Positions 17,990 to 64,000 of a stretch of 64,000 nt of DNA are shown piece by piece (position 1 is the stretch's first letter; each line of letters opens with the position of its first letter). The notes below the pieces were generated by a model that was not told the DNA's origin, did no database searches, and was given only the letters and a program-made list of their open reading frames with translations. The DNA lies in the NCBI GenBank assembly GCA_964057225.1, contig CAXKVF010000078.1:1-64000 (forward strand), given 5' to 3'. The DNA is from Auanema rhodensis. Lineage: Eukaryota; Animalia; Nematoda. Position numbers and translations under genes: made by a program.

Positions 17990-20900
17990 AAATTAAAGTT
18001 CACGTAAATTTCAAAGTCATGGTTACCATGAACCAATATCAATAAAAATTTGTTTTTAGACTAATATGGACATGGGGAATCTAATTTTGAAAACCGCATC
18101 TCTTTATCTTTCACGTGAAGCGAGTTACATACCAAGTGCACATCACGTGTACATTTAATTAGCATAAATTAAAGTTCACGTAAATTTCAAAGTCATGGTT
18201 ACCATGAAGCAATATCAATAAAAATTTGTTTTTAGACTAATATGGACATGGGGAATCTAATTTTGAAAACCGCATCTCTTTATCTTTCACGTGAAGCGAG
18301 TTACATACCAAGTGCACATCACGTGTACATTTAATTATCATGAATTAAAGTTCACGTAAATTTCAAAGTCATGGTTACCATGCACCAATATGAATAAAAA
18401 TTTGTTTTTAGACTAATATGGACATGGGGAATCTAATTTTGAAAACCGCATCTCTTTATCTTTCACGTGAAGCGAGTTACATACCAAGTGCACATCACGT
18501 GTACATTTAATTAGCATAAATTAAAGTTCACGTAAATTTTGTTTTTAGACTAATATGGACATGGGGAATCTAATTTTGAAAACCGCATCTCTTTATCTTT
18601 CACGTGAAGCGAGTTACATACCAAGTGCACATCACGTGTACATTTAATTAGCATAAATTAAAGTTCACGTAAATTTCAAAGTCATGGTTACCATGAAGCA
18701 ATATCAATAAAAATTTGTTTTTAGACTATTATGGACATGAGGAATCTAATTTTGAAAACCGCATCTCTTTATCTTTCACGTGAAGCGAGTTACATACCAA
18801 GTGCACATCACGTGTACATTTAATTAGCATAAATTAAAGTTCACGTAAATTTCAAAGTCATGGTTACCATGAACCAATATCAATAAAAATTTGTTTTTAG
18901 ACTAATATGGACATGGGGAATCTAATTTTGAAAACCGCATCTCTTTATCTTTCACGTGAAGCGAGTTACATACCAAGTGCACATCACGTGTACATTTAAT
19001 TAGCATAAATTAAAGTTCACGTAAATTTCAAAGTCATGGTTACCATGAAGCAATATCAATAAAAATTTGTTTTTAGACTAATATGGACATGGGGAATCTA
19101 ATTTTGAAAACCGCATCTCTTTATCTTTCACGTGAAGCGAGTTACATACCAAGTGCACATCACGTGTACATTTAATTAGCATGAATTAAAGTTCACGTAA
19201 ATTTCAAAGTCATGGTTACCATGCACCAATATCAATAAAAATTTGTTTTTAGACTAATATGGACATGGGGAATCTAATTTTGAAAACCGCATCTCTTTAT
19301 CTTTCACGTGAAGCGAGTTACATACCAAGTGCACATCACGTGTACATTTAATTATCATGAATTAAAGTTCACGTAAATTTCAAAGTCATGGTTACCATGC
19401 ACCAATATGAATAAAAATTTGTTTTTAGACTAATATGGACATGGGGAATCTAATTTTGAAAACCGCATCTCTTTATCTTTCACGTGAAGCGAGTTACATA
19501 CCAAGTGCACATCACGTGTACATTTAATTAGCATAAATTAAAGTTCACGTAAATTTTGTTTTTAGACTAATATGGACATGGGGAATCTAATTTTGAAAAC
19601 CGCATCTCTTTATCTTTCACGTGAAGCGAGTTACATACCAAGTGCACATCACGTGTACATTTAATTAGCATAAATTAAAGTTCACGTAAATTTCAAAGTC
19701 ATGGTTACCATGAAGCAATATCAATAAAAATTTGTTTTTAGACTATTATGGACATGAGGAATCTAATTTTGAAAACCGCATCTCTTTATCTTTCACGTGA
19801 AGCGAGTTACATACCAAGTGCACATCACGTGTACATTTAATTAGCATAAATTAAAGTTCACGTAAATTTCAAAGTCATGGTTACCATGAACCAATATCAA
19901 TAAAAATTTGTTTTTAGACTAATATGGACATGGGGAATCTAATTTTGAAAACCGCATCTCTTTATCTTTCACGTGAAGCGAGTTACATACCAAGTGCACA
20001 TCACGTGTACATTTAATTAGCATAAATTAAAGTTCACGTAAATTTCAAAGTCATGGTTACCATGAAGCAATATCAATAAAAATTTGTTTTTAGACTAATA
20101 TGGACATGGGGAATCTAATTTTGAAAACCGCATCTCTTTATCTTTCACGTGAAGCGAGTTACATACCAAGTGCACATCACGTGTACATTTAATTAGCATG
20201 AATTAAAGTTCACGTAAATTTCAAAGTCATGGTTACCATGCACCAATATCAATAAAAATTTGTTTTTAGACTAATATGGACATGGGGAATCTAATTTTGA
20301 AAACCGCATCTCTTTATCTTTCACGTGAAGCGAGTTACATACCAAGTGCACATCACGTGTACATTTAATTAGCATAAATTAAAGTTCACGTAAATTTCAA
20401 AGTCATGGTTACCATGCACCAATATCAATAAAAATTTGTTTTTAGACTAATATGGACATGGGGAATGTAATTTTGAAAACCGCATCTCTTTATCTTTCAC
20501 GTGAAGCGAGTTACATACCAAGTGCACATCACGTGTACATTTAATTAGCATAAATTAAAGTTCACGTAAATTTCAAAGTCATGGTTACCATGCACCAATA
20601 TCAATAAAAATTTGTTTTTAGACTAATATGGACATGGGGAATCTAATTTTGAAAACCGCATCTCTTTATCTTTCACGTGAAGCGAGTTACATACCAAGTG
20701 CACATCACGTGTACATTTAATTAGCATAAATTAAAGTTCACGTAAATTTCAAAGTCATGGTTACCATGCACCAATATCAATAAAAATTTGTTTTTAGACT
20801 AATATGGACATGGGGAATCTAATTTTGAAAACCGCATCTCTTTATCTTTCACGTGAAGCGAGTTACATACCAAGTGCACATCACGTGTACATTTAATTAG

Positions 20901-23900
20901 CATAAATTAAAGTTCACGTAAATTTCAAAGTCATGGTTACCATGAACCAATATCAATAAAAATTTGTTTTTAGACTAATATGGACATGGGGAATCTAATT
21001 TTGAAAACCGCATCTCTTTATCTTTCACGTGAAGCGAGTTACATACCAAGTGCACATCACGTGTACATTTAATTAGCATAAATTAAAGTTCACGTAAATT
21101 TCAAAGTCATGGTTACCATGAAGCAATATCAATAAAAATTTGTTTTTAGACTAATATGGACATGGGGAATCTAATTTTGAAAACCGCATCTCTTTATCTT
21201 TCACGTGAAGCGAGTTACATACCAAGTGCACATCACGTGTACATTTAATTATCATGAATTAAAGTTCACGTAAATTTCAAAGTCATGGTTACCATGCACC
21301 AATATGAATAAAAATTTGTTTTTAGACTAATATGGACATGGGGAATCTAATTTTGAAAACCGCATCTCTTTATCTTTCACGTGAAGCGAGTTACATACCA
21401 AGTGCACATCACGTGTACATTTAATTAGCATAAATTAAAGTTCACGTAAATTTTGTTTTTAGACTAATATGGACATGGGGAATCTAATTTTGAAAACCGC
21501 ATCTCTTTATCTTTCACGTGAAGCGAGTTACATACCAAGTGCACATCACGTGTACATTTAATTAGCATAAATTAAAGTTCACGTAAATTTCAAAGTCATG
21601 GTTACCATGAAGCAATATCAATAAAAATTTGTTTTTAGACTATTATGGACATGAGGAATCTAATTTTGAAAACCGCATCTCTTTATCTTTCACGTGAAGC
21701 GAGTTACATACCAAGTGCACATCACGTGTACATTTAATTAGCATAAATTAAAGTTCACGTAAATTTCAAAGTCATGGTTACCATGAACCAATATCAATAA
21801 AAATTTGTTTTTAGACTAATATGGACATGGGGAATCTAATTTTGAAAACCGCATCTCTTTATCTTTCACGTGAAGCGAGTTACATACCAAGTGCACATCA
21901 CGTGTACATTTAATTAGCATAAATTAAAGTTCACGTAAATTTCAAAGTCATGGTTACCATGAAGCAATATCAATAAAAATTTGTTTTTAGACTAATATGG
22001 ACATGGGGAATCTAATTTTGAAAACCGCATCTCTTTATCTTTCACGTGAAGCGAGTTACATACCAAGTGCACATCACGTGTACATTTAATTAGCATGAAT
22101 TAAAGTTCACGTAAATTTCAAAGTCATGGTTACCATGCACCAATATCAATAAAAATTTGTTTTTAGACTAATATGGACATGGGGAATCTAATTTTGAAAA
22201 CCGCATCTCTTTATCTTTCACGTGAAGCGAGTTACATACCAAGTGCACATCACGTGTACATTTAATTATCATGAATTAAAGTTCACGTAAATTTCAAAGT
22301 CATGGTTACCATGCACCAATATGAATAAAAATTTGTTTTTAGACTAATATGGACATGGGGAATCTAATTTTGAAAACCGCATCTCTTTATCTTTCACGTG
22401 AAGCGAGTTACATACCAAGTGCACATCACGTGTACATTTAATTAGCATAAATTAAAGTTCACGTAAATTTTGTTTTTAGACTAATATGGACATGGGGAAT
22501 CTAATTTTGAAAACCGCATCTCTTTATCTTTCACGTGAAGCGAGTTACATACCAAGTGCACATCACGTGGACATTTAATTAGCATAAATTAAAGTTCACG
22601 TAAATTTCAAAGTCATGGTTACCATGAAGCAATATCAATAAAAATTTGTTTTTAGACTATTATGGACATGAGGAATCTAATTTTGAAAACCGCATCTCTT
22701 TATCTTTCACGTGAAGCGAGTTACATACCAAGTGCACATCACGTGTACATTTAATTAGCATAAATTAAAGTTCACGTAAATTTCAAAGTCATGGTTACCA
22801 TGAACCAATATCAATAAAAATTTGTTTTTAGACTAATATGGACATGGGGAATCTAATTTTGAAAACCGCATCTCTTTATCTTTCACGTGAAGCGAGTTAC
22901 ATACCAAGTGCACATCACGTGTACATTTAATTAGCATAAATTAAAGTTCACGTAAATTTCAAAGTCATGGTTACCATGAAGCAATATCAATAAAAATTTG
23001 TTTTTAGACTAATATGGACATGGGGAATCTAATTTTGAAAACCGCATCTCTTTATCTTTCACGTGAAGCGAGTTACATACCAAGTGCACATCACGTGTAC
23101 ATTTAATTAGCATGAATTAAAGTTCACGTAAATTTCAAAGTCATGGTTACCATGCACCAATATCAATAAAAATTTGTTTTTAGACTAATATGGACATGGG
23201 GAATCTAATTTTGAAAACCGCATCTCTTTATCTTTCACGTGAAGCGAGTTACATACCAAGTGCACATCACGTGTACATTTAATTAGCATAAATTAAAGTT
23301 CACGTAAATTTCAAAGTCATGGTTACCATGCACCAATATCAATAAAAATTTGTTTTTAGACTAATATGGACATGGGGAATGTAATTTTGAAAACCGCATC
23401 TCTTTATCTTTCACGTGAAGCGAGTTACATACCAAGTGCACATCACGTGTACATTTAATTAGCATAAATTAAAGTTCACGTAAATTTCAAAGTCATGGTT
23501 ACCATGCACCAATATCAATAAAAATTTGTTTTTAGACTAATATGGACATGGGGAATCTAATTTTGAAAACCGCATCTCTTTATCTTTCACGTGAAGCGAG
23601 TTACATACCAAGTGCACATCACGTGTACATTTAATTAGCATAAATTAAAGTTCACGTAAATTTCAAAGTCATGGTTACCATGCACCAATATCAATAAAAA
23701 TTTGTTTTTAGACTAATATGGACATGGGGAATCTAATTTTGAAAACCGCATCTCTTTATCTTTCACGTGAAGCGAGTTACATACCAAGTGCACATCACGT
23801 GTACATTTAATTAGCATAAATTAAAGTTCACGTAAATTTCAAAGTCATGGTTACCATGCACCAATATCAATAAAAATTTGTTTTTAGACTAATATGGACA
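17990..23900. repeat. Nested higher-order repeat: a duplicated 6-mer (1017 bp) inside a duplicated 17-mer (2914 bp), carrying 137-bp deleted monomers; boundaries approximate
   Basis: Deletion junctions at 18540, 19557, 21454 and 22471 have spacings of 1017, 1897 and 1017. The GAATGTAA marker occurs at 20467 and 23381 (+2914). Confidence 0.92.
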
Positions 23901-44900: not shown

Positions 44901-47560
44901 ATACCAAGTGCACATCACGTGTACATTTAATTAGCATAAATTAAAGTTCACGTAAATTTCAAAGCCATGGTTACCATGAACCAATATCAATAAAAATTTG
45001 TTTTTAGACTAATATGGACATGGGGAATCTAATTTTGAAAACCGCATCTCTTTATCTTTCACGTGAAGCGAGTTACATACCAAGTGCACATCACGTGTAC
45101 ATTTAATTAGCATAAATTAAAGTTCACGTAAATTTCAAAGTCATGGTTACCATGAACCAATATCAATAAAAATTTGTTTTTAGACTAATATGGACATGGG
45201 GAATCTAATTTTGAAAACCGCATCTCTTTATCTTTCACGTGAAGCGAGTTACATACCAAGTGCACATCACGTGTACATTTAATTAGCATAAATTAAAGTT
45301 CACGTAAATTTCAAAGTCATGGTTACCATGAACCAATATCAATAAAAATTTGTTTTTAGACTAATATGGACATGGGGAATCTAATTTTGAAAACCGCATC
45401 TCTTTATCTTTCACGTGAAGCGAGTTACATACCAAGTGCACATCACGTGTACATTTAATTAGCATAAATTAAAGTTCACGTAAATTTCAAAGTCATGGTT
45501 ACCATGAACCAATATCAATAAAAATTTGTTTTTAGACTAATATGGACATGGGGAATCTAATTTTGAAAACCGCATCTCTTTATCTTTCACGTGAAGCGAG
45601 TTACATACCAAGTGCACATCACGTGTACATTTAATTAGCATAAATTAAAGTTCACGTAAATTTCAAAGTCATGGTTACCATGAACCAATATCAATAAAAA
45701 TTTGTTTTTAGACTAATATGGACATGGGGAATCTAATTTTGAAAACCGCATCTCTTTATCTTTCACGTGAAGCGAGTTACATACCAAGTGCACATCACGT
45801 GTTCATTTAATTAGCATAAATTAAAGTTCACGTAAATTTCAAAGTCATGGTTACCATGAAGCAATATCAATAAAAATTTGTTTTTAGACTAATATGGACA
45901 TGGGGAATCTAATTTTGAAAACCTCATCTCTTTATCTTTTACGTGAAGCGAGTTACATACCAAGTGCACATCACGTGTACATTTAATTAGCATAAATTAA
46001 AGTTCACGTAAATTTCAAAGTCATGGTTACCATGAACCAATATCAATAAAAATTTGTTTTTAGACTAATATGGACATGGGGAATCTAATTTTGAAAACCG
46101 CATTTCTTTATCTTTCACGTGAAGCGAGTTACATACCAAGTGCACATCACGTGTACATTTAATTAGCATAAATTAAAGTTCACGTAAATTTCAAAGTCAT
46201 GGTTACCATGAACCAATATCAATAAAAATTTGTTTTTAGACTAATATGGACATGGGGAATCTAATTTTGAAAACCGCATCTCTTTATCTCTCACGTGAAG
46301 CGAGTTACATACCAAGTGCACATCACGTGTACATTTAATTAGCATAAATTAAAGTTCATGTAAATTTCAAAGTCATGGTTACCATGAACCAATATCAATA
46401 AAAATTTGTTTTTAGACTAATATGGACATGGGGAATCTAATTTTGAAAACCGCATCTCTTTATCTTTCACGTGAAGCGAGTTACATACCAAGTGCACATC
46501 ACGTGTACATTTAATTAGCATAAATTAAAGTTCACGTAAATTTCAAAGTCATGGTTACCATGAACCAATATCAATAAAAATTTGTTTTTAGACTAATATG
46601 GACATGGGGAATCTAATTTTGAAAACCGCATCTCTTTATCTTTCACGTGAAGCGAGTTACATACCAAGTGCACATCACGTGTACATTTAATTAGCATAAA
46701 TTAAAGTTCACGTAAATTTCAAAGTCATGGTTACCATGAACCAATATCAATAAAAATTTGTTTTTAGACTAATATGGACATGGGGAATCTAATTTTGAAA
46801 ACCGCATCTCTTTATCTTTCACGTGAAGCGAGTTACATACCAAGTGCACATCACGTGTACATTTAATTAGCATAAATTAAAGTTCACGTAAATTTCAAAG
46901 TCATGGTTACCATGAACCAATATCAATAAAAATTTGTTTTTAGACTAATATGGACATGGGGAATCTAATTTTGAAAACCGCATCTCTTTATCTTTCACGT
47001 GAAGCGAGTTACATACCAAGTGCACATCACGTGTACATTTAATTAGCATAAATTAAAGTTCACGTAAATTTCAAAGTCATGGTTACCATGAACCAATATC
47101 AATAAAAATTTGTTTTTAGACTAATATGGACATGGGGAATCTAATTTTGAAAACCGCATTTCTTTATCTTTCACGTGAAGCGAGTTACATACCAAGTGCA
47201 CATCACGTGTACATTTAATTAGCATAAATTAAAGTTCACGTAAATTTCAAAGTCATGGTTACCATGAACCAATATCAATAAAAATTTGTTTTTAGACTAA
47301 TATGGACATGGGGAATCTAATTTTGAAAACCGCATCTCTTTATCTTTCACGTGAAGCGAGTTACATACCAAGTGCACATCACGTGTTCATTTAATTAGCA
47401 TAAATTAAAGTTCACGTAAATTTCAAAGTCATGGTTACCATGAAGCAATATCAATAAAAATTTGTTTTTAGACTAATATGGACATGGGGAATCTAATTTT
47501 GAAAACCGCATCTCTTTATCTTTCACGTGAAGCGAGTTACATACCAAGTGCACATCACGT

Positions 47561-47583
47561 GTTACATACCAAGTGCACATCAC
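47561..47583 (+). repeat. Direct duplication of upstream target sequence at the LINE 5' junction
   Basis: GTTACATACCAAGTGCACATCAC at 47561-47583 repeats 47536-47558 with a 25-bp offset. This was not seen in any other monomer. Confidence 0.95.
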
Positions 47584-47585
47584 CT

Positions 47586-47963
47586 TTCCGCGCCGTGACC
47601 TCATTCCGCGCCGTGACCTCATTCCGCGCCGTGACCTCATTCCGCGCCGTGACCTCATTCCGCGCCGTGACCTCATTCCGCGCCGTGACCTCATTCCGCG
47701 CCGTGACCTCATTCCGCGCCGTGACCTCATTCCGCGCCGTGACCTCATTCCGCGCCGTGACCTCATTCCGCGCCGTGACCTCATTCCGCGCCGTGACCTC
47801 ATTCCGCGCCGTGACCTCATTCCGCGCCGTGACCTCATTCCGCGCCGTGACCTCATTCCGCGCCGTGACCTCATTCCGCGCCGTGACCTCATTCCGCGCC
47901 GTGACCTCATTCCGCGCCGTGACCTCATTCCGCGCCGTGACCTCATTCCGCGCCGTGACCTCA
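47586..47963 (+). repeat. Minisatellite: 21 perfect copies of TTCCGCGCCGTGACCTCA (18 bp) at the 5' end of the LINE
   Basis: The first unit is 47586-47603 and the last is 47946-47963. Each unit is 12/18 GC with 3 CpG. It is unrelated to the 176-bp satellite. Confidence 0.98.
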
Positions 47964-47990
47964 TTTCGTCGGACTGGTTCTTAAAGGTAC

Positions 47991-48188
47991 GCTTTCTTAG
48001 TTCTTTCATTTTTTTTTCTTGTTCTTTTTCTTTTATCTCTTCTATTTTATTACTCTCTCTCTTTTCCAATTCTCTCTGTCCTTTCTGTCTTTTACTTTGT
48101 TATTTATTGTCTTTCACTTCTTTATACCACTGTCTTTACATTCTTTTTTCTTATTTTTCTGTTTCTTAATCTTATCTTTTTTCTCAAT
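47991..48188 (+). other. Pyrimidine-rich (T/C) 5' leader upstream of ORF1
   Basis: About 190 nt of mostly T/C with very few G. There is no AG dinucleotide and no ATG from 48001 to the ORF1 start. Confidence 0.8.
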
Positions 48189-49229
48189 ATGACAGCTGTT
48201 ACAAAAGATTTCTTTACTGATGCTCTCGAGTCTCTTTCCAAATCTTTCCGAGAATCTTTCTCTCAACTTTCATCTGACATCAAAAACGAACTCAACAGTA
48301 TTAAAATCAATGTAGCAGCTAATGAAGCTCGTATCAAAACTATCGAAACAAACCTCAAATCACGTATCGATACTTTAGAGCAACAACTCCTAAATGTTCC
48401 AACTTTCAATGCCTCTTCTCCTTCTCAAACCACTTCTACCAGTATTATGTGTCATGTTCAAAAAGTTCGATCTGAGGAATCAAGGTATTCTTATCGCTTG
48501 AAAAGAGCGGTTTGGTTTAGGGTTCCTCACGATTCATCTGAGTTTCCCTCGGACCCTACCGCCCTTCTCAAACTTATAGCTGGAAAGTCTAATGATGACA
48601 CCTTGATTTCTTTGATTAACAGCAACCAAATAACCATTACTCGCTCAACTCTCAAATCTAATTCTCCAGGCCCTCTCATTATTTCATGTTCAACAGTTGA
48701 TTTACGTGACAAAATCATTGAAACCATTAGGACAAACAAAGCTAAATGTTTTGAAAGCTTGTCTAAAACGTTTATTCGTCGCGATTATCTTCCCTTCGAG
48801 GTAGATCTTGAAAAAAAACTGCGCGAAGAAGCAAAAGCGAAAAATTTGGATAATAGTGAATCACTTTTCATTGTACGCGATCTCAAACTTATAAAGATTC
48901 CACGTAAACCAACTGCCCGTTCAACCACTTCTACTCCACACGTTTCTCTAAATACTTCTACTGTTTCTAAGTCCAATTCAAATGTCCAATGTCCGTCCAA
49001 TATTGATACTGGTGTTATATCTAGCCCCCCTTTTAAATCTAGTAGGAATAGTCGCTCAACTGGCAGGTCAAAAATTCTTTCTCTGGAGAAAAAATCTTCT
49101 ATTAGCCCAAGAAGAAGAAAGAATCCACCACGCTCTGTTAAGCCTACTGCCGAACTTCCTACTAGATCAAGAAGCGGATCCGATACAACATCTTTATCTC
49201 GGTCCTGTAACAACATGTCCTTTCGTTAA
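48189..49229 (+). CDS. LINE ORF1 protein (putative RNA-binding chaperone, 346 aa)
   Basis: It lies directly upstream of ORF2. The N-terminus has a heptad, coiled-coil-like segment (LSSDIKNELNSIK...IDTLEQQL). A central block FIRRDYLPFEVDLEKKLREEA...FIVRDLKL resembles CR1-type ORF1 proteins by recollection. The tail is basic, Ser/Arg-rich and low-complexity, with an NLS-like PRRRK. No CCHC or PHD motif is seen. Confidence 0.85.
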   Translation: MTAVTKDFFTDALESLSKSFRESFSQLSSDIKNELNSIKINVAANEARIKTIETNLKSRIDTLEQQLLNVPTFNASSPSQTTSTSIMCHVQKVRSEESRYSYRLKRAVWFRVPHDSSEFPSDPTALLKLIAGKSNDDTLISLINSNQITITRSTLKSNSPGPLIISCSTVDLRDKIIETIRTNKAKCFESLSKTFIRRDYLPFEVDLEKKLREEAKAKNLDNSESLFIVRDLKLIKIPRKPTARSTTSTPHVSLNTSTVSKSNSNVQCPSNIDTGVISSPPFKSSRNSRSTGRSKILSLEKKSSISPRRRKNPPRSVKPTAELPTRSRSGSDTTSLSRSCNNMSFR

Positions 49230-52065
49230 AACCGCTTCTTCACCATGCTTGCTTTCTTCTCATGTCCCTGTTAAACTATCAGTCCACTGTTACAATGCAC
49301 GTTCTATTCTCAATAAACTTCATTTCCTCACAATCATTCATTCTATCTCATCCCCTGATATCATCGCCATATCGGAATCTTGGCTGTTTTCTGATTTTTC
49401 TTCTGATCATCTTCCTCTAAATGATCATTACAACATATTCAGAGCAGACAAGCATTCTTCACGCGGCGGTGGTACTCTTTTGTTCTTAAAAAAACAAATT
49501 AACTCAATTTTACTCTCCTCCTCACCCCTCTCTTCATCGGTTCAATATGTTACCATCCTTCTAACCTCTAACAACTCGGTTTTCTCCGTTTGTTATCGTT
49601 CCCCTACTGCTTCTCACTCTGATTTTTGTTCTTATCTTTCTGATCTCAATGGTCATATTTCTAACCGCTCTTTCTTTATTACGGGTGACCTGAACTTTCC
49701 TAATATCAATTGGGATCTTCTTCAGTCCTCACTCTCATCTCCTTCTAGTAAATCAATTATTCAATTTCTCCAAAGTAGTCACTCTGATCAACTTGTCAAT
49801 TTTCCTACACGTGGTAACAACATCTTAGACTACCTTATCACAAACAATCCTTCAATCATATCTAATATATCACGCTCCCCTCCATTGGGTAACTCCGATC
49901 ACTTCTCGGTTACATTCTCCATCATCATCAACACCCCTGTATCCCCTCTGGATACCCTTCCTTTCTCTTCCAATACATTCTTCAATACCTCCTCACTTTC
50001 CAACTTTTCTCAACTCAATTTCTATCGAGCCGACTTCAATGCCATCAATCGCCATCTTGTCAGCATCGACTTTTCTTTGGTATTATCTGGTCTTTCCCCT
50101 CTTGACTCTTACTCCAAATTCACCAACATCCTACAATCCATAATCTCTGTATTCGTTCCTCACAAACAACCTAGGCGTAGAAAAAAAGTTGACCGCAATA
50201 TTGCGGATCTCTACTGTTACATCAAAAGGCTCAGTTCATCTATTTGCCACCGTGACGAGCTTCTCCGCAAAAAACTAACTATAAAACTAGATAGACTTAT
50301 TAAACAAAAGTCTATTTTGGAAGAAGAACACATTGCTTCAACCAATAACCCCAAACTTTTTTATCGCTTCTGTAGAACTCGTCTCGGTGGTTGCTCTTCA
50401 GATATCCCCACGATTAGACTTGGTGAAGAAATATACTCGACAGACACAGAAAAAGCTTCCATTTTTGCAAGCTCTTTTTCTGTCAAACCAAGTATTTCAT
50501 CGGATTTAATCAACAGCTCCTCTCGCCCTTCCTCTATCATTGATTTTATAGACATTTCTCCCGAAAAAGTCTATAAAGTTCTTTCTCATCTTCCTCTCAG
50601 AGTTTCTACTTCTTCTGATGGCATTCCCTACTACTTTCTTAATCAGTGCGCCTCTACTCTTTGCTACCCACTTGCCTTCATTTTTCACAATTTACTCGTT
50701 TCTTCTTCATGCCCTCCGGACTGGAAGAAAGCTTGGATCCGTCCTGTTTTCAAATCCGGAAATCGCTCTAATCCTTCAAACTATCGCCCTATATCATTAA
50801 CACCAAGTCTTTCCAAAGTTTTTGAGCGACTCATTTCACCCCCGCTCCTCCACTTTGGCATTTCTACTGGATCTATATCTGCTCACCAGCACGCTTTTCT
50901 TCCTAAACGTAATACCATATCAGCAATCATTAACAATCATATTGCCTGGAGATCATGTTTGGATAAAAACATTCCAGTCTATACTGCTTTTATAGACTTC
51001 TCTAAAGCTTTTGATCTAATTGATCACTCGGTTCTTTTCCACAAATTTAAAACCATTGGTATCTGCGGTTCTCTTCAAACTTTTCTCAAAAACTTCATCA
51101 CTGGCAGATCTTACTCAGTTCTTGTCAATGGTTCTCTTTCTACTTCTGTAAACTTATCTTGTGGTGTCCCACAAGGCACTGTTCTCGGTCCTCTTCTATT
51201 CCTTTTCTACATTAATGACATTACGTCTTCTCTCCCTGAAGACGTTCATCCTACACTTTTTGCCGATGATCTCAAACTATACAGTACTAATCCGGTAAGT
51301 CTACAGATTGCCTTAAACACAATCAACGCCTGGTGCAAAAATAATGGAATGATGGTCAACACCACCAAATCCAAAATTATGATTGTGTGCAATAATAGCT
51401 CAACCCTCAACCCCACCGAGCCATTTACCTTTGGTGAGTTTCCTTTAGACTTTGTACCTCATTATAAAGACCTTGGAGTCTTAACTGATAACAATCTAAC
51501 ATTTGATTGTCACATAAACGCCATCTCTTGCGCCGCAGCTCTGAAATGTCGCATCCTTCTACGTTGCTTCTACTCTAGATCACCTTCATTTATGTTCAAC
51601 CTTTTTTGCAGCTACGTTCGACCAATCCTTGAATATGCATCCGTGATATGGTCTCCCCAAGTATCTAAAAAAATATCTCGTATTGAGATGGTTCAAAAAA
51701 AATTCTTGCGAGCAGTCTTCTCAAGAGCAGGAATTTTTTCCGACTACAAAAGTCAGCTCACTTTTTTGAATGCTCAAGAACTATCAACCAGGAGACAGGT
51801 AACTGATCTAGGTTTCTATTTCTCTCAAATTAAAGACGTATCAACGGACAGTATTTTAAGAATTTTTCAAATTAAACATTTCACCCACTCTCTTCGCAGA
51901 CACCAATGGAATATCGACTATCCCGAGCTTCGGAAAAAGGCGACAAGAAATGGTATTGAGTACAGAAGCATCAAAACATGGAACGATCTACCTGAAAACC
52001 TTATCAACCTTACTAATGTTCATAATTTTAAAAAACACCTACTCTCTGCTCCAATTGATTTGTAA
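48982..52065 (+). CDS. LINE ORF2: apurinic-type endonuclease plus reverse transcriptase (1027 aa; true start uncertain)
   Basis: Endonuclease motifs are YNARS (49291), SESW, RGGG, YRSP, GDLN (49684), LDY and SDH (49894). RT motifs are NYRPISLT, QHAF, FIDFSKAFD, GVPQGTVLGPLLFLFYIND and FADD (51259-51270). The downstream YVRPILEYASVIWSP motif is typical of CR1/L2-group ORF2. No stops or frameshifts. No evident RNase H or C-terminal CCHC knuckle. Confidence 0.97.
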   Translation: MSNVRPILILVLYLAPLLNLVGIVAQLAGQKFFLWRKNLLLAQEEERIHHALLSLLPNFLLDQEADPIQHLYLGPVTTCPFVKTASSPCLLSSHVPVKLSVHCYNARSILNKLHFLTIIHSISSPDIIAISESWLFSDFSSDHLPLNDHYNIFRADKHSSRGGGTLLFLKKQINSILLSSSPLSSSVQYVTILLTSNNSVFSVCYRSPTASHSDFCSYLSDLNGHISNRSFFITGDLNFPNINWDLLQSSLSSPSSKSIIQFLQSSHSDQLVNFPTRGNNILDYLITNNPSIISNISRSPPLGNSDHFSVTFSIIINTPVSPLDTLPFSSNTFFNTSSLSNFSQLNFYRADFNAINRHLVSIDFSLVLSGLSPLDSYSKFTNILQSIISVFVPHKQPRRRKKVDRNIADLYCYIKRLSSSICHRDELLRKKLTIKLDRLIKQKSILEEEHIASTNNPKLFYRFCRTRLGGCSSDIPTIRLGEEIYSTDTEKASIFASSFSVKPSISSDLINSSSRPSSIIDFIDISPEKVYKVLSHLPLRVSTSSDGIPYYFLNQCASTLCYPLAFIFHNLLVSSSCPPDWKKAWIRPVFKSGNRSNPSNYRPISLTPSLSKVFERLISPPLLHFGISTGSISAHQHAFLPKRNTISAIINNHIAWRSCLDKNIPVYTAFIDFSKAFDLIDHSVLFHKFKTIGICGSLQTFLKNFITGRSYSVLVNGSLSTSVNLSCGVPQGTVLGPLLFLFYINDITSSLPEDVHPTLFADDLKLYSTNPVSLQIALNTINAWCKNNGMMVNTTKSKIMIVCNNSSTLNPTEPFTFGEFPLDFVPHYKDLGVLTDNNLTFDCHINAISCAAALKCRILLRCFYSRSPSFMFNLFCSYVRPILEYASVIWSPQVSKKISRIEMVQKKFLRAVFSRAGIFSDYKSQLTFLNAQELSTRRQVTDLGFYFSQIKDVSTDSILRIFQIKHFTHSLRRHQWNIDYPELRKKATRNGIEYRSIKTWNDLPENLINLTNVHNFKKHLLSAPIDL

Positions 52066-52553
52066 ACCATCCATTGTAATTAATGTTCTCACCTCTCGAA
52101 AAACTATTTTTTTTTCTTTTATCAGGCTCCTTTTTATTTGTAGTTCGTATTTTTTTACACTTCTCTATGACCACATGGCAACAGTCTACCATCTATTTTT
52201 CTTTGTCCCTTCTCAATAATTGTTACTTCGTCACTATTCCTATAGACATTAGTCATACGGATCGGACGCTAGTTACCTCCAAATTGCTAGAACGGGCTTG
52301 CCTCACATCACGAGTACCACCGTACCTAACAACCACATTAGTGAGGTCAGCCATTGTGCTGAACAAACCCCAAGCATACAGCAAGAATTTTATTTGGCAG
52401 ACTGTTCACTATTGATCATAGATAAGCGAGCTCTTATCGAACTTACAATATTAAAAGTCCTTTTTTATGTTCTTATTGAATGGTTCTTGATTTTTTCACT
52501 CCATGACTTAACAGCTACTGTCTTAACCTGTGATATTGAACAATAAACATTAA
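52066..52553 (+). other. LINE 3' UTR (about 490 bp) with terminal AATAAA and no poly(A) tail
   Basis: It runs from the ORF2 stop to the satellite junction. T-rich flanks surround a compositionally balanced core at about 52225-52440. AATAAA is at 52542-52547. Confidence 0.85.
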
Positions 52554-55500
52554 ACGTGTACATTTAATTAGCATAAATTAAAGTTCACGTAAATTTCAAA
52601 GTCATGGTTACCATGAACCAATATCAATAAAAATTTGTTTTTAGACTAATATGGACATGGGGAATCTAATTTTGAAAACCGCATCTCTTTATCTTTCACG
52701 TGAAGCGAGTTACATACCAAGTGCACATCACGTGTTCATTTAATTAGCATAAATTAAAGTTCACGTAAATTTCAAAGTCATGGTTACCATGAAGCAATAT
52801 CAATAAAAATTTGTTTTTAGACTAATATGGACATGGGGAATCTAATTTTGAAAACCGCATTTCTTTATCTTTCACGTGAAGCGAGTTACATACCAAGTGC
52901 ACATCACGTGTACATTTAATTAGCATAAATTAAAGTTCACGTAAATTTCAAAGTCATGGTTACCATGCACCAATATCAATAAAAATTTGTTTTTAGACTA
53001 ATATGGACATGGGGAATCTAATTTTGAAAACCGCATCTCTTTATCTTTCACGTGAAGCGAGTTACATACCAAGTGCACATCACGTGTACATTTAATTAGC
53101 ATAAATTAAAGTTCACGTAAATTTCAAAGTCATGGTTACCATGAAGCAATATCAATAAAAATGTGTTTTTAGACTAATATGGACATGGGGAATCTAATTT
53201 TGAAAACCGCATCTCTTTATCTCTCACGTGAAGCGAGTTACATACCAAGTGCACATCACGTGTACATTTAATTAGCATAAATTAAAGTTCACGTAAATTT
53301 CAAAGTCATGGTTACCATGAACCAATATCAATAAAAATTTGTTTTTAGACTAATATGGACATGGGGAATCTAATTTTGAAAACCGCATCTCTTTATCTTT
53401 CACGTGAAGCGAGTTACATACCAAGTGCACATCACGTGTACATTTAATTAGCATAAATTAAAGTTCACGTAAATTTCAAAGTCATGGTTACCATGAACCA
53501 ATATCAATAAAAATTTGTTTTTAGACTAATATGGACATGGGGAATCTAATTTTGAAAACCGCATCTCTTTATCTTTCACGTGAAGCGAGTTACATACCAA
53601 GTGCACATCACGTGTACATTTAATTAGCATAAATTAAAGTTCACGTAAATTTCAAAGCCATGGTTACCATGAACCAATATCAATAAAAATTTGTTTTTAG
53701 ACTAATATGGACATGGGGAATCTAATTTTGAAAACCGCATCTCTTTATCTTTCACGTGAAGCGAGTTACATACCAAGTGCACATCACGTGTACATTTAAT
53801 TAGCATAAATTAAAGTTCACGTAAATTTCAAAGTCATGGTTACCATGAACCAATATCAATAAAAATTTGTTTTTAGACTAATATGGACATGGGGAATCTA
53901 ATTTTGAAAACCGCATCTCTTTATCTTTCACGTGAAGCGAGTTACATACCAAGTGCACATCACGTGTACATTTAATTAGCATAAATTAAAGTTCACGTAA
54001 ATTTCAAAGTCATGGTTACCATGAACCAATATCAATAAAAATTTGTTTTTAGACTAATATGGACATGGGGAATCTAATTTTGAAAACCGCATCTCTTTAT
54101 CTTTCACGTGAAGCGAGTTACATACCAAGTGCACATCACGTGTACATTTAATTAGCATAAATTAAAGTTCACGTAAATTTCAAAGTCATGGTTACCATGA
54201 AGCAATATCAATAAAAATTTGTTTTTAGACTAATATGGACATGGGGAATCTAATTTTGAAAACCGCATCTCTTTATCTTTCACGTGAAGCGAGTTACATA
54301 CCAAGTGCACATCACGTGTACATTTAATTAGCATAAATTAAAGTTCACGTAAATTTCAAAGTCATGGTTACCATGAACCAATATCAATAAAAATTTGTTT
54401 TTAGACTAATATGGACATGGGGAATCTAATTTTGAAAACCGCATTTCTTTATCTTTCACGTGAAGCGAGTTACATACCAAGTGCACATCACGTGTACATT
54501 TAATTAGCATAAATTAAAGTTCACGTAAATTTCAAAGTCATGGTTACCATGAACCAATATCAATAAAAATTTGTTTTTAGACTAATATGGACATGGGGAA
54601 TCTAATTTTGAAAACCGCATCTCTTTATCTTTCACGTGAAGCGAGTTACATACCAAGTGCACATCACGTGTACATTTAATTAGCATAAATTAAAGTTCAC
54701 GTAAATTTCAAAGTCATGGTTACCATGAACCAATATCAATAAAAATTTGTTTTTAGACTAATATGGACATGGGGAATCTAATTTTGAAAACCGCATCTCT
54801 TTATCTTTCACGTGAAGCGAGTTACATACCAAGTGCACATCACGTGTACATTTAATTAGCATAAATTAAAGTTCACGTAAATTTCAAAGTCATGGTTACC
54901 ATGAACCAATATCAATAAAAATTTGTTTTTAGACTAATATGGACATGGGGAATCTAATTTTGAAAACCGCATCTCTTTATCTTTCACGTGAAGCGAGTTA
55001 CATACCAAGTGCACATCACGTGTACATTTAATTAGCATAAATTAAAGTTCACGTAAATTTCAAAGTCATGGTTACCATGAACCAATATCAATAAAAATTT
55101 GTTTTTAGACTAATATGGACATGGGGAATCTAATTTTGAAAACCGCATCTCTTTATCTTTCACGTGAAGCGAGTTACATACCAAGTGCACATCACGTGTA
55201 CATTTAATTAGCATAAATTAAAGTTCACGTAAATTTCAAAGTCATGGTTACCATGAACCAATATCAATAAAAATTTGTTTTTAGACTAATATGGACATGG
55301 GGAATCTAATTTTGAAAACCGCATCTCTTTATCTTTCACGTGAAGCGAGTTACATACCAAGTGCACATCACGTGTACATTTAATTAGCATAAATTAAAGT
55401 TCACGTAAATTTCAAAGTCATGGTTACCATGAACCAATATCAATAAAAATTTGTTTTTAGACTAATATGGACATGGGGAATCTAATTTTGAAAACCGCAT

Positions 55501-58500
55501 CTCTTTATCTTTCACGTGAAGCGAGTTACATACCAAGTGCACATCACGTGTTCATTTAATTAGCATAAATTAAAGTTCACGTAAATTTCAAAGTCATGGT
55601 TACCATGAAGCAATATCAATAAAAATTTGTTTTTAGACTAATATGGACATGGGGAATCTAATTTTGAAAACCGCATCTCTTTATCTTTCACGTGAAGCGA
55701 GTTACATACCAAGTGCACATCACGTGTACATTTAATTAGCATAAATTAAAGTTCACGTAAATTTCAAAGTCATGGTTACCATGAACCAATATCAATAAAA
55801 ATTTGTTTTTAGACTAATATGGACATGGGGAATCTAATTTTGAAAACCGCATTTCTTTATCTTTCACGTGAAGCGAGTTACATACCAAGTGCACATCACG
55901 TGTACATTTAATTAGCATAAATTAAAGTTCACGTAAATTTCAAAGTCATGGTTACCATGAACCAATATCAATAAAAATTTGTTTTTAGACTAATATGGAC
56001 ATGGGGAATCTAATTTTGAAAACCGCATCTCTTTATCTTTCACGTGAAGCGAGTTACATACCAAGTGCACATCACGTGTACATTTAATTAGCATAAATTA
56101 AAGTTCACGTAAATTTCAAAGTCATGGTTACCATGAACCAATATCAATAAAAATTTGTTTTTAGACTAATATGGACATGGGGAATCTAATTTTGAAAACC
56201 GCATTTCTTTATCTTTCACGTGAAGCGAGTTACATACCAAGTGCACATCACGTGTACATTTAATTAGCATAAATTAAAGTTCACGTAAATTTCAAAGTCA
56301 TGGTTACCATGCACCAATATCAATAAAAATTTGTTTTTAGACTAATATGGACATGGGGAATCTAATTTTGAAAACCGCATCTCTTTATCTTTCACGTGAA
56401 GCGAGTTACATACCAAGTGCACATCACGTGTACATTTAATTAGCATAAATTAAAGTTCACGTAAATTTTAAAGTCATGGTTACCATGAACCAATATCAAT
56501 AAAAATTTGTTTTTAGACTAATATGGACATGGGGAATCTAATTTTGAAAACCGCATCTCTTTATCTTTCACGTGAAGCGAGTTACATACCAAGTGCACAT
56601 CACGTGTACATTTAATTAGCATAAATTAAAGTTCACGTAAATTTCAAAGTCATGGTTACCATGAACTAATATCAATAAAAATTTGTTTTTAGACTAATAT
56701 GGACATGGAGAATCTAATTTTGAAAACCGCATCTCTTTATCTTTCACGTGAAGCGAGTTACATACCAAGTGCACATCACGTGTACATTTAATTAGCATAA
56801 ATTAAAGTTCACGTAAATTTCAAAGTCATGGTTACCATGAACCAATATCAATAAAAATTTGTTTTTAGACTAATATGGACATGGGGAATCTAATTTTGAA
56901 AACCGCATCTCTTTATCTTTCACGTGAAGCGAGTTACATACCAAGTGCACATCACGTGTTCATTTAATTAGCATAAATTAAAGTTCACGTAAATTTCAAA
57001 GTCATGGTTACCATGAAGCAATATCAATAAAAATTTGTTTTTAGACTAATATGGACATGGGGAATCTAATTTTGAAAACCGCATTTCTTTATCTTTCACG
57101 TGAAGCGAGTTACATACCAAGTGCACATCACGTGTACATTTAATTAGCATAAATTAAAGTTCACGTAAATTTTAAAGTCATGGTTACCATGAACCAATAT
57201 CAATAAAAATTTGTTTTTAGACTAATATGGACATGGGGAATCTAATTTTGAAAACCGCATCTCTTTATCTTTCACGTGAAGCGAGTTACATACCAAGTGC
57301 ACATCACGTGTACATTTAATTAGCATAAATTAAAGTTCACGTAAATTTCAAAGTCATGGTTACCATGAACTAATATCAATAAAAATTTGTTTTTAGACTA
57401 ATATGGACATGGAGAATCTAATTTTGAAAACCGCATCTCTTTATCTTTCACGTGAAGCGAGTTACATACCAAGTGCACATCACGTGTACATTTAATTAGC
57501 ATAAATTAAAGTTCACGTAAATTTCAAAGTCATGGTTACCATGAACCAATATCAATAAAAATTTGTTTTTAGACTAATATGGACATGGGGAATCTAATTT
57601 TGAAAACCGCATCTCTTTATCTTTCACGTGAAGCGAGTTACATACCAAGTGCACATCACGTGTTCATTTAATTAGCATAAATTAAAGTTCACGTAAATTT
57701 CAAAGTCATGGTTACCATGAAGCAATATCAATAAAAATTTGTTTTTAGACTAATATGGACATGGGGAATCTAATTTTGAAAACCGCATTTCTTTATCTTT
57801 CACGTGAAGCGAGTTACATACCAAGTGCACATCACGTGTACATTTAATTAGCATAAATTAAAGTTCACGTAAATTTCAAAGTCATGGTTACCATGCACCA
57901 ATATCAATAAAAATTTGTTTTTAGACTAATATGGACATGGGGAATCTAATTTTGAAAACCGCATCTCTTTATCTTTCACGTGAAGCGAGTTACATACCAA
58001 GTGCACATCACGTGTACATTTAATTAGCATAAATTAAAGTTCACGTAAATTTCAAAGTCATGGTTACCATGAAGCAATATCAATAAAAATGTGTTTTTAG
58101 ACTAATATGGACATGGGGAATCTAATTTTGAAAACCGCATCTCTTTATCTCTCACGTGAAGCGAGTTACATACCAAGTGCACATCACGTGTACATTTAAT
58201 TAGCATAAATTAAAGTTCACGTAAATTTCAAAGTCATGGTTACCATGAACCAATATCAATAAAAATTTGTTTTTAGACTAATATGGACATGGGGAATCTA
58301 ATTTTGAAAACCGCATCTCTTTATCTTTCACGTGAAGCGAGTTACATACCAAGTGCACATCACGTGTACATTTAATTAGCATAAATTAAAGTTCACGTAA
58401 ATTTCAAAGTCATGGTTACCATGAACCAATATCAATAAAAATTTGTTTTTAGACTAATATGGACATGGGGAATCTAATTTTGAAAACCGCATCTCTTTAT

Positions 58501-61500
58501 CTTTCACGTGAAGCGAGTTACATACCAAGTGCACATCACGTGTACATTTAATTAGCATAAATTAAAGTTCACGTAAATTTCAAAGCCATGGTTACCATGA
58601 ACCAATATCAATAAAAATTTGTTTTTAGACTAATATGGACATGGGGAATCTAATTTTGAAAACCGCATCTCTTTATCTTTCACGTGAAGCGAGTTACATA
58701 CCAAGTGCACATCACGTGTACATTTAATTAGCATAAATTAAAGTTCACGTAAATTTCAAAGTCATGGTTACCATGAACCAATATCAATAAAAATTTGTTT
58801 TTAGACTAATATGGACATGGGGAATCTAATTTTGAAAACCGCATCTCTTTATCTTTCACGTGAAGCGAGTTACATACCAAGTGCACATCACGTGTACATT
58901 TAATTAGCATAAATTAAAGTTCACGTAAATTTCAAAGTCATGGTTACCATGAACCAATATCAATAAAAATTTGTTTTTAGACTAATATGGACATGGGGAA
59001 TCTAATTTTGAAAACCGCATCTCTTTATCTTTCACGTGAAGCGAGTTACATACCAAGTGCACATCACGTGTACATTTAATTAGCATAAATTAAAGTTCAC
59101 GTAAATTTCAAAGTCATGGTTACCATGAAGCAATATCAATAAAAATTTGTTTTTAGACTAATATGGACATGGGGAATCTAATTTTGAAAACCGCATCTCT
59201 TTATCTTTCACGTGAAGCGAGTTACATACCAAGTGCACATCACGTGTACATTTAATTAGCATAAATTAAAGTTCACGTAAATTTCAAAGTCATGGTTACC
59301 ATGAACCAATATCAATAAAAATTTGTTTTTAGACTAATATGGACATGGGGAATCTAATTTTGAAAACCGCATTTCTTTATCTTTCACGTGAAGCGAGTTA
59401 CATACCAAGTGCACATCACGTGTACATTTAATTAGCATAAATTAAAGTTCACGTAAATTTCAAAGTCATGGTTACCATGAACCAATATCAATAAAAATTT
59501 GTTTTTAGACTAATATGGACATGGGGAATCTAATTTTGAAAACCGCATCTCTTTATCTTTCACGTGAAGCGAGTTACATACCAAGTGCACATCACGTGTA
59601 CATTTAATTAGCATAAATTAAAGTTCACGTAAATTTCAAAGTCATGGTTACCATGAACCAATATCAATAAAAATTTGTTTTTAGACTAATATGGACATGG
59701 GGAATCTAATTTTGAAAACCGCATCTCTTTATCTTTCACGTGAAGCGAGTTACATACCAAGTGCACATCACGTGTACATTTAATTAGCATAAATTAAAGT
59801 TCACGTAAATTTCAAAGTCATGGTTACCATGAACCAATATCAATAAAAATTTGTTTTTAGACTAATATGGACATGGGGAATCTAATTTTGAAAACCGCAT
59901 CTCTTTATCTTTCACGTGAAGCGAGTTACATACCAAGTGCACATCACGTGTACATTTAATTAGCATAAATTAAAGTTCACGTAAATTTCAAAGTCATGGT
60001 TACCATGAACCAATATCAATAAAAATTTGTTTTTAGACTAATATGGACATGGGGAATCTAATTTTGAAAACCGCATCTCTTTATCTTTCACGTGAAGCGA
60101 GTTACATACCAAGTGCACATCACGTGTACATTTAATTAGCATAAATTAAAGTTCACGTAAATTTCAAAGTCATGGTTACCATGAACCAATATCAATAAAA
60201 ATTTGTTTTTAGACTAATATGGACATGGGGAATCTAATTTTGAAAACCGCATCTCTTTATCTTTCACGTGAAGCGAGTTACATACCAAGTGCACATCACG
60301 TGTACATTTAATTAGCATAAATTAAAGTTCACGTAAATTTCAAAGTCATGGTTACCATGAACCAATATCAATAAAAATTTGTTTTTAGACTAATATGGAC
60401 ATGGGGAATCTAATTTTGAAAACCGCATCTCTTTATCTTTCACGTGAAGCGAGTTACATACCAAGTGCACATCACGTGTTCATTTAATTAGCATAAATTA
60501 AAGTTCACGTAAATTTCAAAGTCATGGTTACCATGAAGCAATATCAATAAAAATTTGTTTTTAGACTAATATGGACATGGGGAATCTAATTTTGAAAACC
60601 GCATCTCTTTATCTTTCACGTGAAGCGAGTTACATACCAAGTGCACATCACGTGTACATTTAATTAGCATAAATTAAAGTTCACGTAAATTTCAAAGTCA
60701 TGGTTACCATGAACCAATATCAATAAAAATTTGTTTTTAGACTAATATGGACATGGGGAATCTAATTTTGAAAACCGCATTTCTTTATCTTTCACGTGAA
60801 GCGAGTTACATACCAAGTGCACATCACGTGTACATTTAATTAGCATAAATTAAAGTTCACGTAAATTTCAAAGTCATGGTTACCATGAACCAATATCAAT
60901 AAAAATTTGTTTTTAGACTAATATGGACATGGGGAATCTAATTTTGAAAACCGCATCTCTTTATCTTTCACGTGAAGCGAGTTACATACCAAGTGCACAT
61001 CACGTGTACATTTAATTAGCATAAATTAAAGTTCACGTAAATTTCAAAGTCATGGTTACCATGAACCAATATCAATAAAAATTTGTTTTTAGACTAATAT
61101 GGACATGGGGAATCTAATTTTGAAAACCGCATTTCTTTATCTTTCACGTGAAGCGAGTTACATACCAAGTGCACATCACGTGTACATTTAATTAGAATAA
61201 ATTAAAGTTCACGTAAATTTCAAAGTCATGGTTACCATGCACCAATATCAATAAAAATTTGTTTTTAGACTAATATGGACATGGGGAATCTAATTTTGAA
61301 AACCGCATCTCTTTATCTTTCACGTGAAGCGAGTTACATACCAAGTGCACATCACGTGTACATTTAATTAGCATAAATTAAAGTTCACGTAAATTTTAAA
61401 GTCATGGTTACCATGAACCAATATCAATAAAAATTTGTTTTTAGACTAATATGGACATGGGGAATCTAATTTTGAAAACCGCATCTCTTTATCTTTCACG

Positions 61501-64000
61501 TGAAGCGAGTTACATACCAAGTGCACATCACGTGTACATTTAATTAGCATAAATTAAAGTTCACGTAAATTTCAAAGTCATGGTTACCATGAACTAATAT
61601 CAATAAAAATTTGTTTTTAGACTAATATGGACATGGAGAATCTAATTTTGAAAACCGCATCTCTTTATCTTTCACGTGAAGCGAGTTACATACCAAGTGC
61701 ACATCACGTGTACATTTAATTAGCATAAATTAAAGTTCACGTAAATTTTAAAGTCATGGTTACCATGAACCAATATCAATAAAAATTTGTTTTTAGACTA
61801 ATATGGACATGGGGAATCTAATTTTGAAAACCGCATCTCTTTATCTTTCACGTGAAGCGAGTTACATACCAAGTGCACATCACGTGTACATTTAATTAGC
61901 ATAAATTAAAGTTCACGTAAATTTCAAAGTCATGGTTACCATGAACCAATATCAATAAAAATTTGTTTTTAGACTAATATGGACATGGGGAATCTAATTT
62001 TGAAAACCGCATCTCTTTATCTTTCACGTGAAGCGAGTTACATACCAAGTGCACATCACGTGTTCATTTAATTAGCATAAATTAAAGTTCACGTAAATTT
62101 CAAAGTCATGGTTACCATGAAGCAATATCAATAAAAATTTGTTTTTAGACTAATATGGACATGGGGAATCTAATTTTGAAAACCGCATCTCTTTATCTTT
62201 CACGTGAAGCGAGTTACATACCAAGTGCACATCACGTGTACATTTAATTAGCATAAATTAAAGTTCACGTAAATTTCAAAGTCATGGTTACCATGAACCA
62301 ATATCAATAAAAATTTGTTTTTAGACTAATATGGACATGGGGAATCTAATTTTGAAAACCGCATTTCTTTATCTTTCACGTGAAGCGAGTTACATATCAA
62401 GTGCACATCACGTGTACATTTAATTAGCATAAATTAAAGTTCACGTAAATTTCAAAGTCATGGTTACCATGAACCAATATCAATAAAAATTTGTTTTTAG
62501 ACTAATATGGACATGGGGAATCTAATTTTGAAAACCGCATCTCTTTATCTTTCACGTGAAGCGAGTTACATACCAAGTGCACATCACGTGTACATTTAAT
62601 TAGCATAAATTAAAGTTCACGTAAATTTCAAAGTCATGGTTACCATGAACCAATATCAATAAAAATTTGTTTTTAGACTAATATGGACATGGGGAATCTA
62701 ATTTTGAAAACCGCATTTCTTTATCTTTCACGTGAAGCGAGTTACATACCAAGTGCACATCACGTGTACATTTAATTAGCATAAATTAAAGTTCACGTAA
62801 ATTTCAAAGTCATGGTTACCATGCACCAATATCAATAAAAATTTGTTTTTAGACTAATATGGACATGGGGAATCTAATTTTGAAAACCGCATCTCTTTAT
62901 CTTTCACGTGAAGCGAGTTACATACCAAGTGCACATCACGTGTACATTTAATTAGCATAAATTAAAGTTCACGTAAATTTTAAAGTCATGGTTACCATGA
63001 ACCAATATCAATAAAAATTTGTTTTTAGACTAATATGGACATGGGGAATCTAATTTTGAAAACCGCATCTCTTTATCTTTCACGTGAAGCGAGTTACATA
63101 CCAAGTGCACATCACGTGTACATTTAATTAGCATAAATTAAAGTTCACGTAAATTTCAAAGTCATGGTTACCATGAACTAATATCAATAAAAATTTGTTT
63201 TTAGACTAATATGGACATGGAGAATCTAATTTTGAAAACCGCATCTCTTTATCTTTCACGTGAAGCGAGTTACATACCAAGTGCACATCACGTGTACATT
63301 TAATTAGCATAAATTAAAGTTCACGTAAATTTTAAAGTCATGGTTACCATGAACCAATATCAATAAAAATTTGTTTTTAGACTAATATGGACATGGAGAA
63401 TCTAATTTTGAAAACCGCATCTCTTTATCTTTCACGTGAAGCGAGTTACATACCAAGTGCACATCACGTGTACATTTAATTAGCATAAATTAAAGTTCAC
63501 GTAAATTTTAAAGTCATGGTTACCATGAACCAATATCAATAAAAATTTGTTTTTAGACTAATATGGACATGGGGAATCTAATTTTGAAAACCGCATCTCT
63601 TTATCTTTCACGTGAAGCGAGTTACATACCAAGTGCACATCACGTGTACATTTAATTAGCATAAATTAAAGTTCACGTAAATTTCAAAGTCATGGTTACC
63701 ATGAACCAATATCAATAAAAATTTGTTTTTAGACTAATATGGACATGGGGAATCTAATTTTGAAAACCGCATCTCTTTATCTTTCACGTGAAGCGAGTTA
63801 CATACCAAGTGCACATCACGTGTTCATTTAATTAGCATAAATTAAAGTTCACGTAAATTTCAAAGTCATGGTTACCATGAAGCAATATCAATAAAAATTT
63901 GTTTTTAGACTAATATGGACATGGGGAATCTAATTTTGAAAACCGCATCTCTTTATCTTTCACGTGAAGCGAGTTACATACCAAGTGCACATCACGTGTA
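52554..64000. repeat. 176-bp tandem satellite array, right arm (about 65 monomers), same orientation as the left arm
   Basis: Satellite resumes as ACGTGTACATTTAATTAGC at 52554. Monomer starts at 52714 and 63978 are exactly 64 x 176 apart. The array runs off the right edge of the window. Confidence 0.99.
52714..61730. repeat. Higher-order duplication with a 28-monomer offset (4928 bp) right of the LINE; boundaries approximate
   Basis: AATGTGTTT at 53163 and 58091, AAGCCATGG at about 53657 and 58585, TTTTAAAG at about 56468 and 61396, and GGAGAAT at about 56709 and 61637. Confidence 0.88.

Follow-up and report, generated by a model that had tools for sequence, protein, structure and literature searches.

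A near-copy of the insertion site inside the conserved 3' UTR core of a LINE in a nematode satellite array

How a retrotransposon finds one base within a tandem repeat, and whether its own RNA helps to read that base, is the question raised by a 64,000-nucleotide stretch of Auanema rhodensis DNA (contig CAXKVF010000078.1, positions 1 to 64,000; hereafter the window). The whole window is a single 176-bp satellite array, interrupted once by a LINE on the + strand at 47584-52553, the one LINE copy that it holds. The 3' UTR of this LINE carries a two-part near-copy of its own insertion site, which an earlier note took as a possible RNA guide for targeting the satellite. We lean towards a different reading, in which the stretch is part of a conserved module recognised by the element's reverse transcriptase (RT), its resemblance to the target is either a relic or coincidental, and the site is read by the endonuclease.

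The LINE is full length, running from 5' repeats through ORF1 and ORF2 to the 3' UTR. Its 5' end consists of 21 copies of an 18-bp repeat (47586-47965, + strand), and these units (TTCCGCGCCGTGACCTCA) are perfect and CpG-containing, in sharp contrast with their AT-rich surroundings. ORF1 (48189-49229, + strand, 346 aa) has no Pfam match. ORF2 (48982-52065, + strand, 1027 aa) encodes an APE endonuclease and an RT, matching Exo_endo_phos at 2e-08 and RVT_1 at 3e-32, and Pfam gives no DNA-binding domain other than these two. Judged by this order of domains, an AP-endonuclease-like domain and then an RT in ORF2, the element belongs to the APE-type LINEs (non-LTR retrotransposons). The predicted ORF2 frame overlaps ORF1 by 248 nt (48982-49229), and the endonuclease domain begins only ~100 codons into it. 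The 3' UTR (52066-52553, + strand, 488 nt) ends ...AACAATAAACATTAA (ACATTAA), without poly(A), a microsatellite or any other repeat tail. Searching Rfam at E<=1 with the whole LINE and its flanks gave no match, known ribozymes and LINE 3' elements included.

The surrounding array comprises 337 site anchors and 330 full monomers, at a mean divergence of 0.7% from the consensus. Its upstream part (1-47561, + strand) is made of 176-bp units and ends ...CACATCACGTG, its downstream part (52554-64000, + strand) restarts at ACGTGTAC, and the consensus of the 330 monomers across the insertion point reads ...GAAGCGAGTTACATACCAAGTGCACATC^ACGTGTAC. Within 18491-22559 there are four 137-bp monomers, which are 39-bp deletion variants starting at 18491, 19508, 21405 and 22422; their spacing of 1017, 1897 and 1017 bp indicates a 2,914-bp segmental duplication within the array. 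Runs of variant monomers, such as ADOPVADH and AAMAADCAAAAAASCAC, also turn up repeatedly elsewhere in it. The LINE does not lie within any duplicated block inside this window. The monomer that it interrupts (47375-47561) and the second monomer after it (52724-52899) have two rare variants in common, T at position 13 and G at position 71 of the monomer (numbered from CACATC); at both positions the monomer directly following the LINE resembles the consensus.

The junctions of the LINE carry traces of how it was inserted. At the 3' junction the sequence passes from ...CATTAA(52553) directly into ACGTGTAC(52554), and the ACGTG at 47557-47561 is found again at 52554-52558, a repeat flanking the LINE that is likely a 5-bp target-site duplication. 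Between the upstream flank and the LINE sits an extra satellite segment (47562-47583, + strand) of 22 nt, or 23 nt counting G47561. It is an exact copy of the satellite immediately upstream of the site (TTACATACCAAGTGCACATCAC) and ends at CACATCAC, 2 nt beyond the 3'-junction position. The RNA 5' end of R2 keeps about 28 nt of upstream rRNA, and the cDNA end can in this way anneal to the upstream target (PMC13580325). Because this review of R2 describes the same arrangement, we take the 22 nt, by analogy, for upstream target that the RNA of a donor copy brought along at its 5' end. So read, the 5' extra implies that the donor LINE lay at the same satellite site. A past capture of satellite sequence is also plausible, since LINE RNA that starts with 22 nt of upstream target would itself carry satellite.

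Copies outside the window were followed in Logan contigs of four runs (X1, X3, X7, X10) under three organism labels, for the region 48000-52700. Two unitigs from two of the organism labels, X3#23 (51894-52580) and X7#32 (52220-52581), run from the UTR across the 3' junction into the satellite and stop 27-28 nt into it, where other tails merge. A tail variant from X7, with three indels in the last 20 nt (52535-52551), reaches the same junction, and a contig from X3 joins UTR position 52333 to 52551. Three different tail variants enter the satellite at the same ACGTGTAC, as is directly observed in the contigs. Among the contig loose ends listed, no well-supported one leads from 52553 into non-satellite DNA, bearing in mind that Logan contigs drop rare forms. 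The concern that other copies might be inserted at unrelated sites is not borne out in these contig ends, where the LINE 3' end adjoins only ACGTGTAC. The same-site junctions and the 5' carry-over favour true site specificity, and co-amplification of the LINE with the satellite is possible too. As to the tails themselves, the 52333/52551 contig (label B) possibly represents a short-tailed form that ends soon after the second block of the near-copy, and both it and the three-indel tail (label C) are seen only on short contig sides.

The palindrome at the site is not unique within the repeat unit. Each monomer contains two CACGTG E-box palindromes (TTTCACGTGAAG and ATCACGTGTAC) together with a half-site (TTCACGTAAA). 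Insertion is at the second CACGTG box only and the TTTCACGTGAAG box is not used here, therefore specificity must read flanking bases.

The near-copy in the 3' UTR consists of two blocks on the + strand. Block 1 (52264-52285) matches the satellite upstream of the site at 16 of 22 positions without a gap; in the version first described (GCTAGTTACCTCCAA, 52268-52282) it matches at 13 of 16 with one gap. Block 2 (52304-52317, CACATCACGAGTAC) matches CACATC^ACGTGTAC at 13 of 14 positions. Both blocks were found where the earlier note had placed them, and its claim that block 2 has the strand of the target and spans the insertion point, here the nick position, was confirmed; the match and its position are thus matters of direct observation. 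Block 2 contains a 9-nt exact core, and its lone mismatch changes the CACGTG palindrome to CACGAG. Taken together, the blocks align 36 contiguous target bases to 52264-52317, with 29 of the 36 identical and one 17-nt insert on the UTR side. In an alignment to the monomer the similarity is confined to these 36 nt, with none further out, and on this ground we rejected both an origin of the satellite from the UTR and large-scale capture of a monomer. A former 3' end at 52309 followed by read-through was also rejected, as the bases after ACGAGTAC are unlike the satellite after ACGTGTAC.

How far this match exceeds chance depends on how the comparison is drawn, and the shuffle test called for earlier gave a divided answer. 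Against the whole monomer the match is ordinary. A Smith-Waterman alignment of the UTR on both strands gives P=0.21, a gapped chain placed anywhere in the monomer gives P 0.035-0.6, varying with gap costs, and whole-monomer tests on both strands fall overall at P 0.2-0.6. When the whole LINE (47966-52553) is compared on both strands with every satellite 14-mer, block 2 is the only 13/14 match, one observed where shuffles give a mean of 0.8 expected somewhere in the LINE. Tests centred on the site are more favourable. An ungapped same-strand match across the junction has P=0.0012 (5000 dinucleotide shuffles), the highest-scoring local alignment on either strand within ±20 to ±44 nt of the site has P 0.003-0.08, and block 1 conditional on block 2 has P=0.023. 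The match beats chance because of its position at the insertion point only. The target likeness is real and modestly above chance; as the site-centred tests were framed after the match was seen, amid a scan of very many windows, it is suggestive and not compelling.

The minimum-free-energy fold places block 2 within a predicted hairpin at 52295-52352 (+ strand), closed by an 11-bp stem in which GGCU.GCCUCAC pairs with GUGAGGU.AGCC. Predicted pair probabilities in this hairpin are near 1, for a fold whose z-score against shuffles is a modest -1.7. Inside it lies a predicted mini-hairpin, GUAC-CACC-GUAC (52314-52325, + strand), preceded by a linker, AUCACGA (52307-52313), that contains the nick-equivalent position and is predicted to be unpaired with p about 0.9. 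Half of block 2, its first three and last four bases, is in predicted helices. The spacer of 17-21 nt between the blocks holds the 5' strand of the closing stem, and therefore blocks 1 and 2 cannot both pair with adjoining target bases unless this stem opens. Two stems had been suggested previously. The CCTCAC/GTGAGG stem is present in the minimum-free-energy fold of the window copy, but a commoner read variant (C added after 52335, T52342 lost) is predicted to shorten it to CCU/AGG. As the CAC/GUG pairs are lost in this variant and CACAUCACGA becomes unpaired in its predicted fold, the stem is not strictly kept. The CTAG/CTAG stem is a palindrome pair of 4-5 bp that appears in some folding contexts only.

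Both blocks lie inside a conserved 3' UTR core of ~150 nt, with approximate limits at 52239-52395 (+ strand). Contig depth over this core is 3-8x that of both flanking UTR bins in X1, X3 and X7; in X1, for instance, the core bin reaches 317 against 44 and 52 in the neighbouring bins. The excess comes with a second abundant LINE family, whose core differs from that of the window copy only by the added C after 52335 and the loss of T52342, at core contig depths of 268 in X1, 101 in X3, 48 in X7 and 3.1 in X10. At depths that match in the same four runs (246, 113, 30 and 3.3), another contig has 10-11 substitutions in 51920-51978, so that the second family diverges by ~17% where the ORF2 C-terminus is best kept. 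No contig of second-family depth in the four Logan runs aligns to 51985-52238 or 52396-52552, and depth over 52396-52552, downstream of the core, is not raised in these contigs. From the depths and the contig pattern it therefore follows that ~150 nt of UTR are near-identical between families with strongly diverged proteins. The shared core is directly observed, and its near-identity could come from recent exchange of the module instead of selection.

Among 5.8 billion proteins, no relative above 46% identity was found for ORF2 or for its C-terminal 249 aa, the best database relatives being only 25-30% identical, and a spurious UTR ORF had no match at all. The UTR core and the satellite site, searched as exact patterns in JGI metagenomes and GTDB genomes, gave no match. 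The C-terminal WNxLP...FKK motif of ORF2 is also present in the relative L001. The window LINE may thus be CR1-like, a placement based on the C-terminal motif and (GTAA)n tail of L001, which look CR1-like. The nearest relative, P0001/L001, was rejected as a comparator for covariation, being an ordinary CR1-like element whose UTR is short, whose tail is (GTAA)n and which lies outside satellite.

In the reading towards which we lean, the 80-nt stretch (52268-52347) would sit in a ~150-nt structured 3' UTR module of a probably CR1-like LINE that appears to insert at one position of the 176-bp satellite. The element's own RT would recognise the module and so start target-primed reverse transcription, as in LINEs requiring their own 3' UTR, while the APE endonuclease would choose the site. 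A read-through RNA 3' end (into ACGUGUAC) may pair briefly with the nicked primer, and the cDNA 3' end may pair briefly with the upstream target, as in R1 and R2. The module's resemblance to the target would be due to a short satellite piece once picked up or to positional coincidence, and it is most probably unused in targeting. We infer the recognition by the RT from conservation and the fold, and we infer the read-through pairing and the capture too. This module reading has in its favour the core shared with a diverged family, the predicted hairpin, the same-site junctions and a match that is ordinary unless its position is prespecified. The extra copy of upstream target at the 5' end, by analogy with R2, also speaks for it (PMC13580325). 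Against it, a junction-spanning P of about 0.001, to which block 1 adds about 0.02, is low for coincidence, and a neutral relic would not be expected to persist in the best-conserved part of the UTR. The nick-equivalent bases are moreover predicted to be single-stranded, which would suit pairing or protein contact and argues against an unused likeness. The fold z-score of only -1.7 and the chance that the core was recently exchanged also weigh against a selected module.

An RNA guide or tether, as first proposed, would work by base pairing of the unpaired AUCACGA, together with its flanks, to the bottom strand over the nick, so holding the RNP at one CACGTG; we consider it unlikely. Perhaps block 1 would join this pairing once the closing stem melts, or alternatively the cDNA of AUCACGA and its flanks would pair with the displaced top strand and hold the nascent cDNA at the site. 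The T-to-A change (CACGAG) would on such a reading keep the LINE's own DNA from becoming a target. The sense RNA segment is indeed complementary to the bottom strand at 13 of 14 positions across the nick, the sole 13/14 match in the whole LINE falls exactly on the insertion site, and the site-centred P values given above are nominally significant. The blocks lie in the core kept almost unchanged in the second family, the central 7 nt of the block 2 region are predicted unpaired, and disuse of the monomer's other CACGTG (TTTCACGTGAAG) means that flanks must be read. However, joint pairing of both blocks clashes with the predicted closing stem, and predicted helices take up half of block 2. Primer annealing at block 2 would lead to an internal cDNA start and the loss of the last 244 nt (52310-52553). 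The window copy kept these 244 nt, so there was no internal start at block 2, and no junction lacking 52310-52553 is seen among the best-supported loose ends of the Logan contigs. The post hoc framing of the test across many windows weighs against a guide as well, and APE LINEs are not known to open duplex DNA. The fuller claim, that an internal single-stranded UTR segment pairs with the target across the nick and picks one of the two CACGTG boxes, so that the LINE would be potentially reprogrammable, is slightly more doubtful again.

Protein could instead account for the likeness. ORF2p, ORF1p or a host satellite-binding factor may recognise a CACATCACG-type motif in two places, the target DNA and the RNA or DNA of the LINE, in which case the resemblance would be convergent and involve no base pairing. 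The motif is conserved within the core, part of it falls in the predicted single-stranded junction linker, a usual site of protein contact, and the target holds an E-box palindrome. That E-box is broken in the UTR copy (CACGAG), however, and Pfam gives no candidate DNA-binding domain except APE and RT. We also know of no precedent among LINEs for one surface that reads both duplex DNA and folded RNA, and the idea seems improbable. It is more improbable still that the near-copy acts as DNA, from which a short transcript of the tail alone, with the RT-recognition core in it, would start. Block 1 does resemble the satellite bases where the 5' extra begins (GTTACAT), and the start of that extra falls inside the target stretch equivalent to block 1. 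Against such a start, no RNA run contains the LINE, and the depth at 52396-52552, which is not raised, indicates that tail-only copies are not abundant.

Among known systems, R2 and R1 resemble the window LINE in behaviour. They occupy a single fixed position of a multicopy repeat and keep to one orientation, as the window LINE appears to do, and their protein recognises a structured 3' UTR, a role that the core would share. R2 carries ~28 nt of upstream target on its RNA 5' end, compared with 22-23 nt in the window LINE, and a few nt of downstream target at its RNA 3' end pair with the primer (PMC13580325). The target-derived sequence of R2 and R1 is terminal and comes from co-transcription, whereas the site copy of the window LINE is internal, 237-290 nt from the 3' end, and is a diverged copy of the uninterrupted site. 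The endonucleases also differ, that of R2 being restriction-like with zinc-finger and Myb domains and that of the window LINE being APE.

The window LINE also resembles the stringent CR1/L2-type LINEs such as UnaL2, reportedly the subject of work by Kajikawa and Okada in 2002. In common with them it has the APE and RT domains in ORF2, a CR1-like C-terminal motif, a 3' module shared between lineages and a conserved stem-loop in the 3' UTR that the element's own RT probably needs for recognition. Insertion of the stringent CR1/L2 LINEs is largely unselective as to site, and short tandem repeats form their 3' ends. Unlike them, the window LINE ends in ACATTAA without repeats, apparently uses one site and has a much longer UTR (488 nt); L001 likewise ends in (GTAA)n, a tandem-repeat tail that the window LINE does not have. 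In its apparent choice of one position of a tandem repeat unit it is like Tx1L in the PTR-1 repeats of Xenopus and the Cp1 SINE in the centromeric repeats of Chironomus. The specificity of Tx1L is attributed to its endonuclease, and we know of no internal near-copy of the target described for Tx1L or Cp1. A two-part RNA that matches both sides of the insertion, as the earlier note proposed here, is found in the EBS/IBS pairing of group II introns and in the bridge RNA of IS110. In both of these systems the pairing has been demonstrated, covaries with the target and is reprogrammable. Their enzymology is unrelated to that of the window LINE, in which any such pairing would be putative.

Site-specific LINEs underlie new tools for RNA-templated gene insertion. 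In every studied site-specific LINE, to our knowledge, the site is read by protein, aided only by a few terminal base pairs. Target reading by an internal RNA segment would, if true, introduce a new principle among eukaryotic retrotransposons, one that could in principle be reprogrammed. The guide aside, the locus combines an apparently CR1-like LINE that seems tied to one satellite base, an R2-like 5' carry-over and a 3' module far better conserved than the protein. The window LINE thus offers a useful natural setting in which to study how APE LINEs become site-specific and how they last in satellite or centromere-like arrays.
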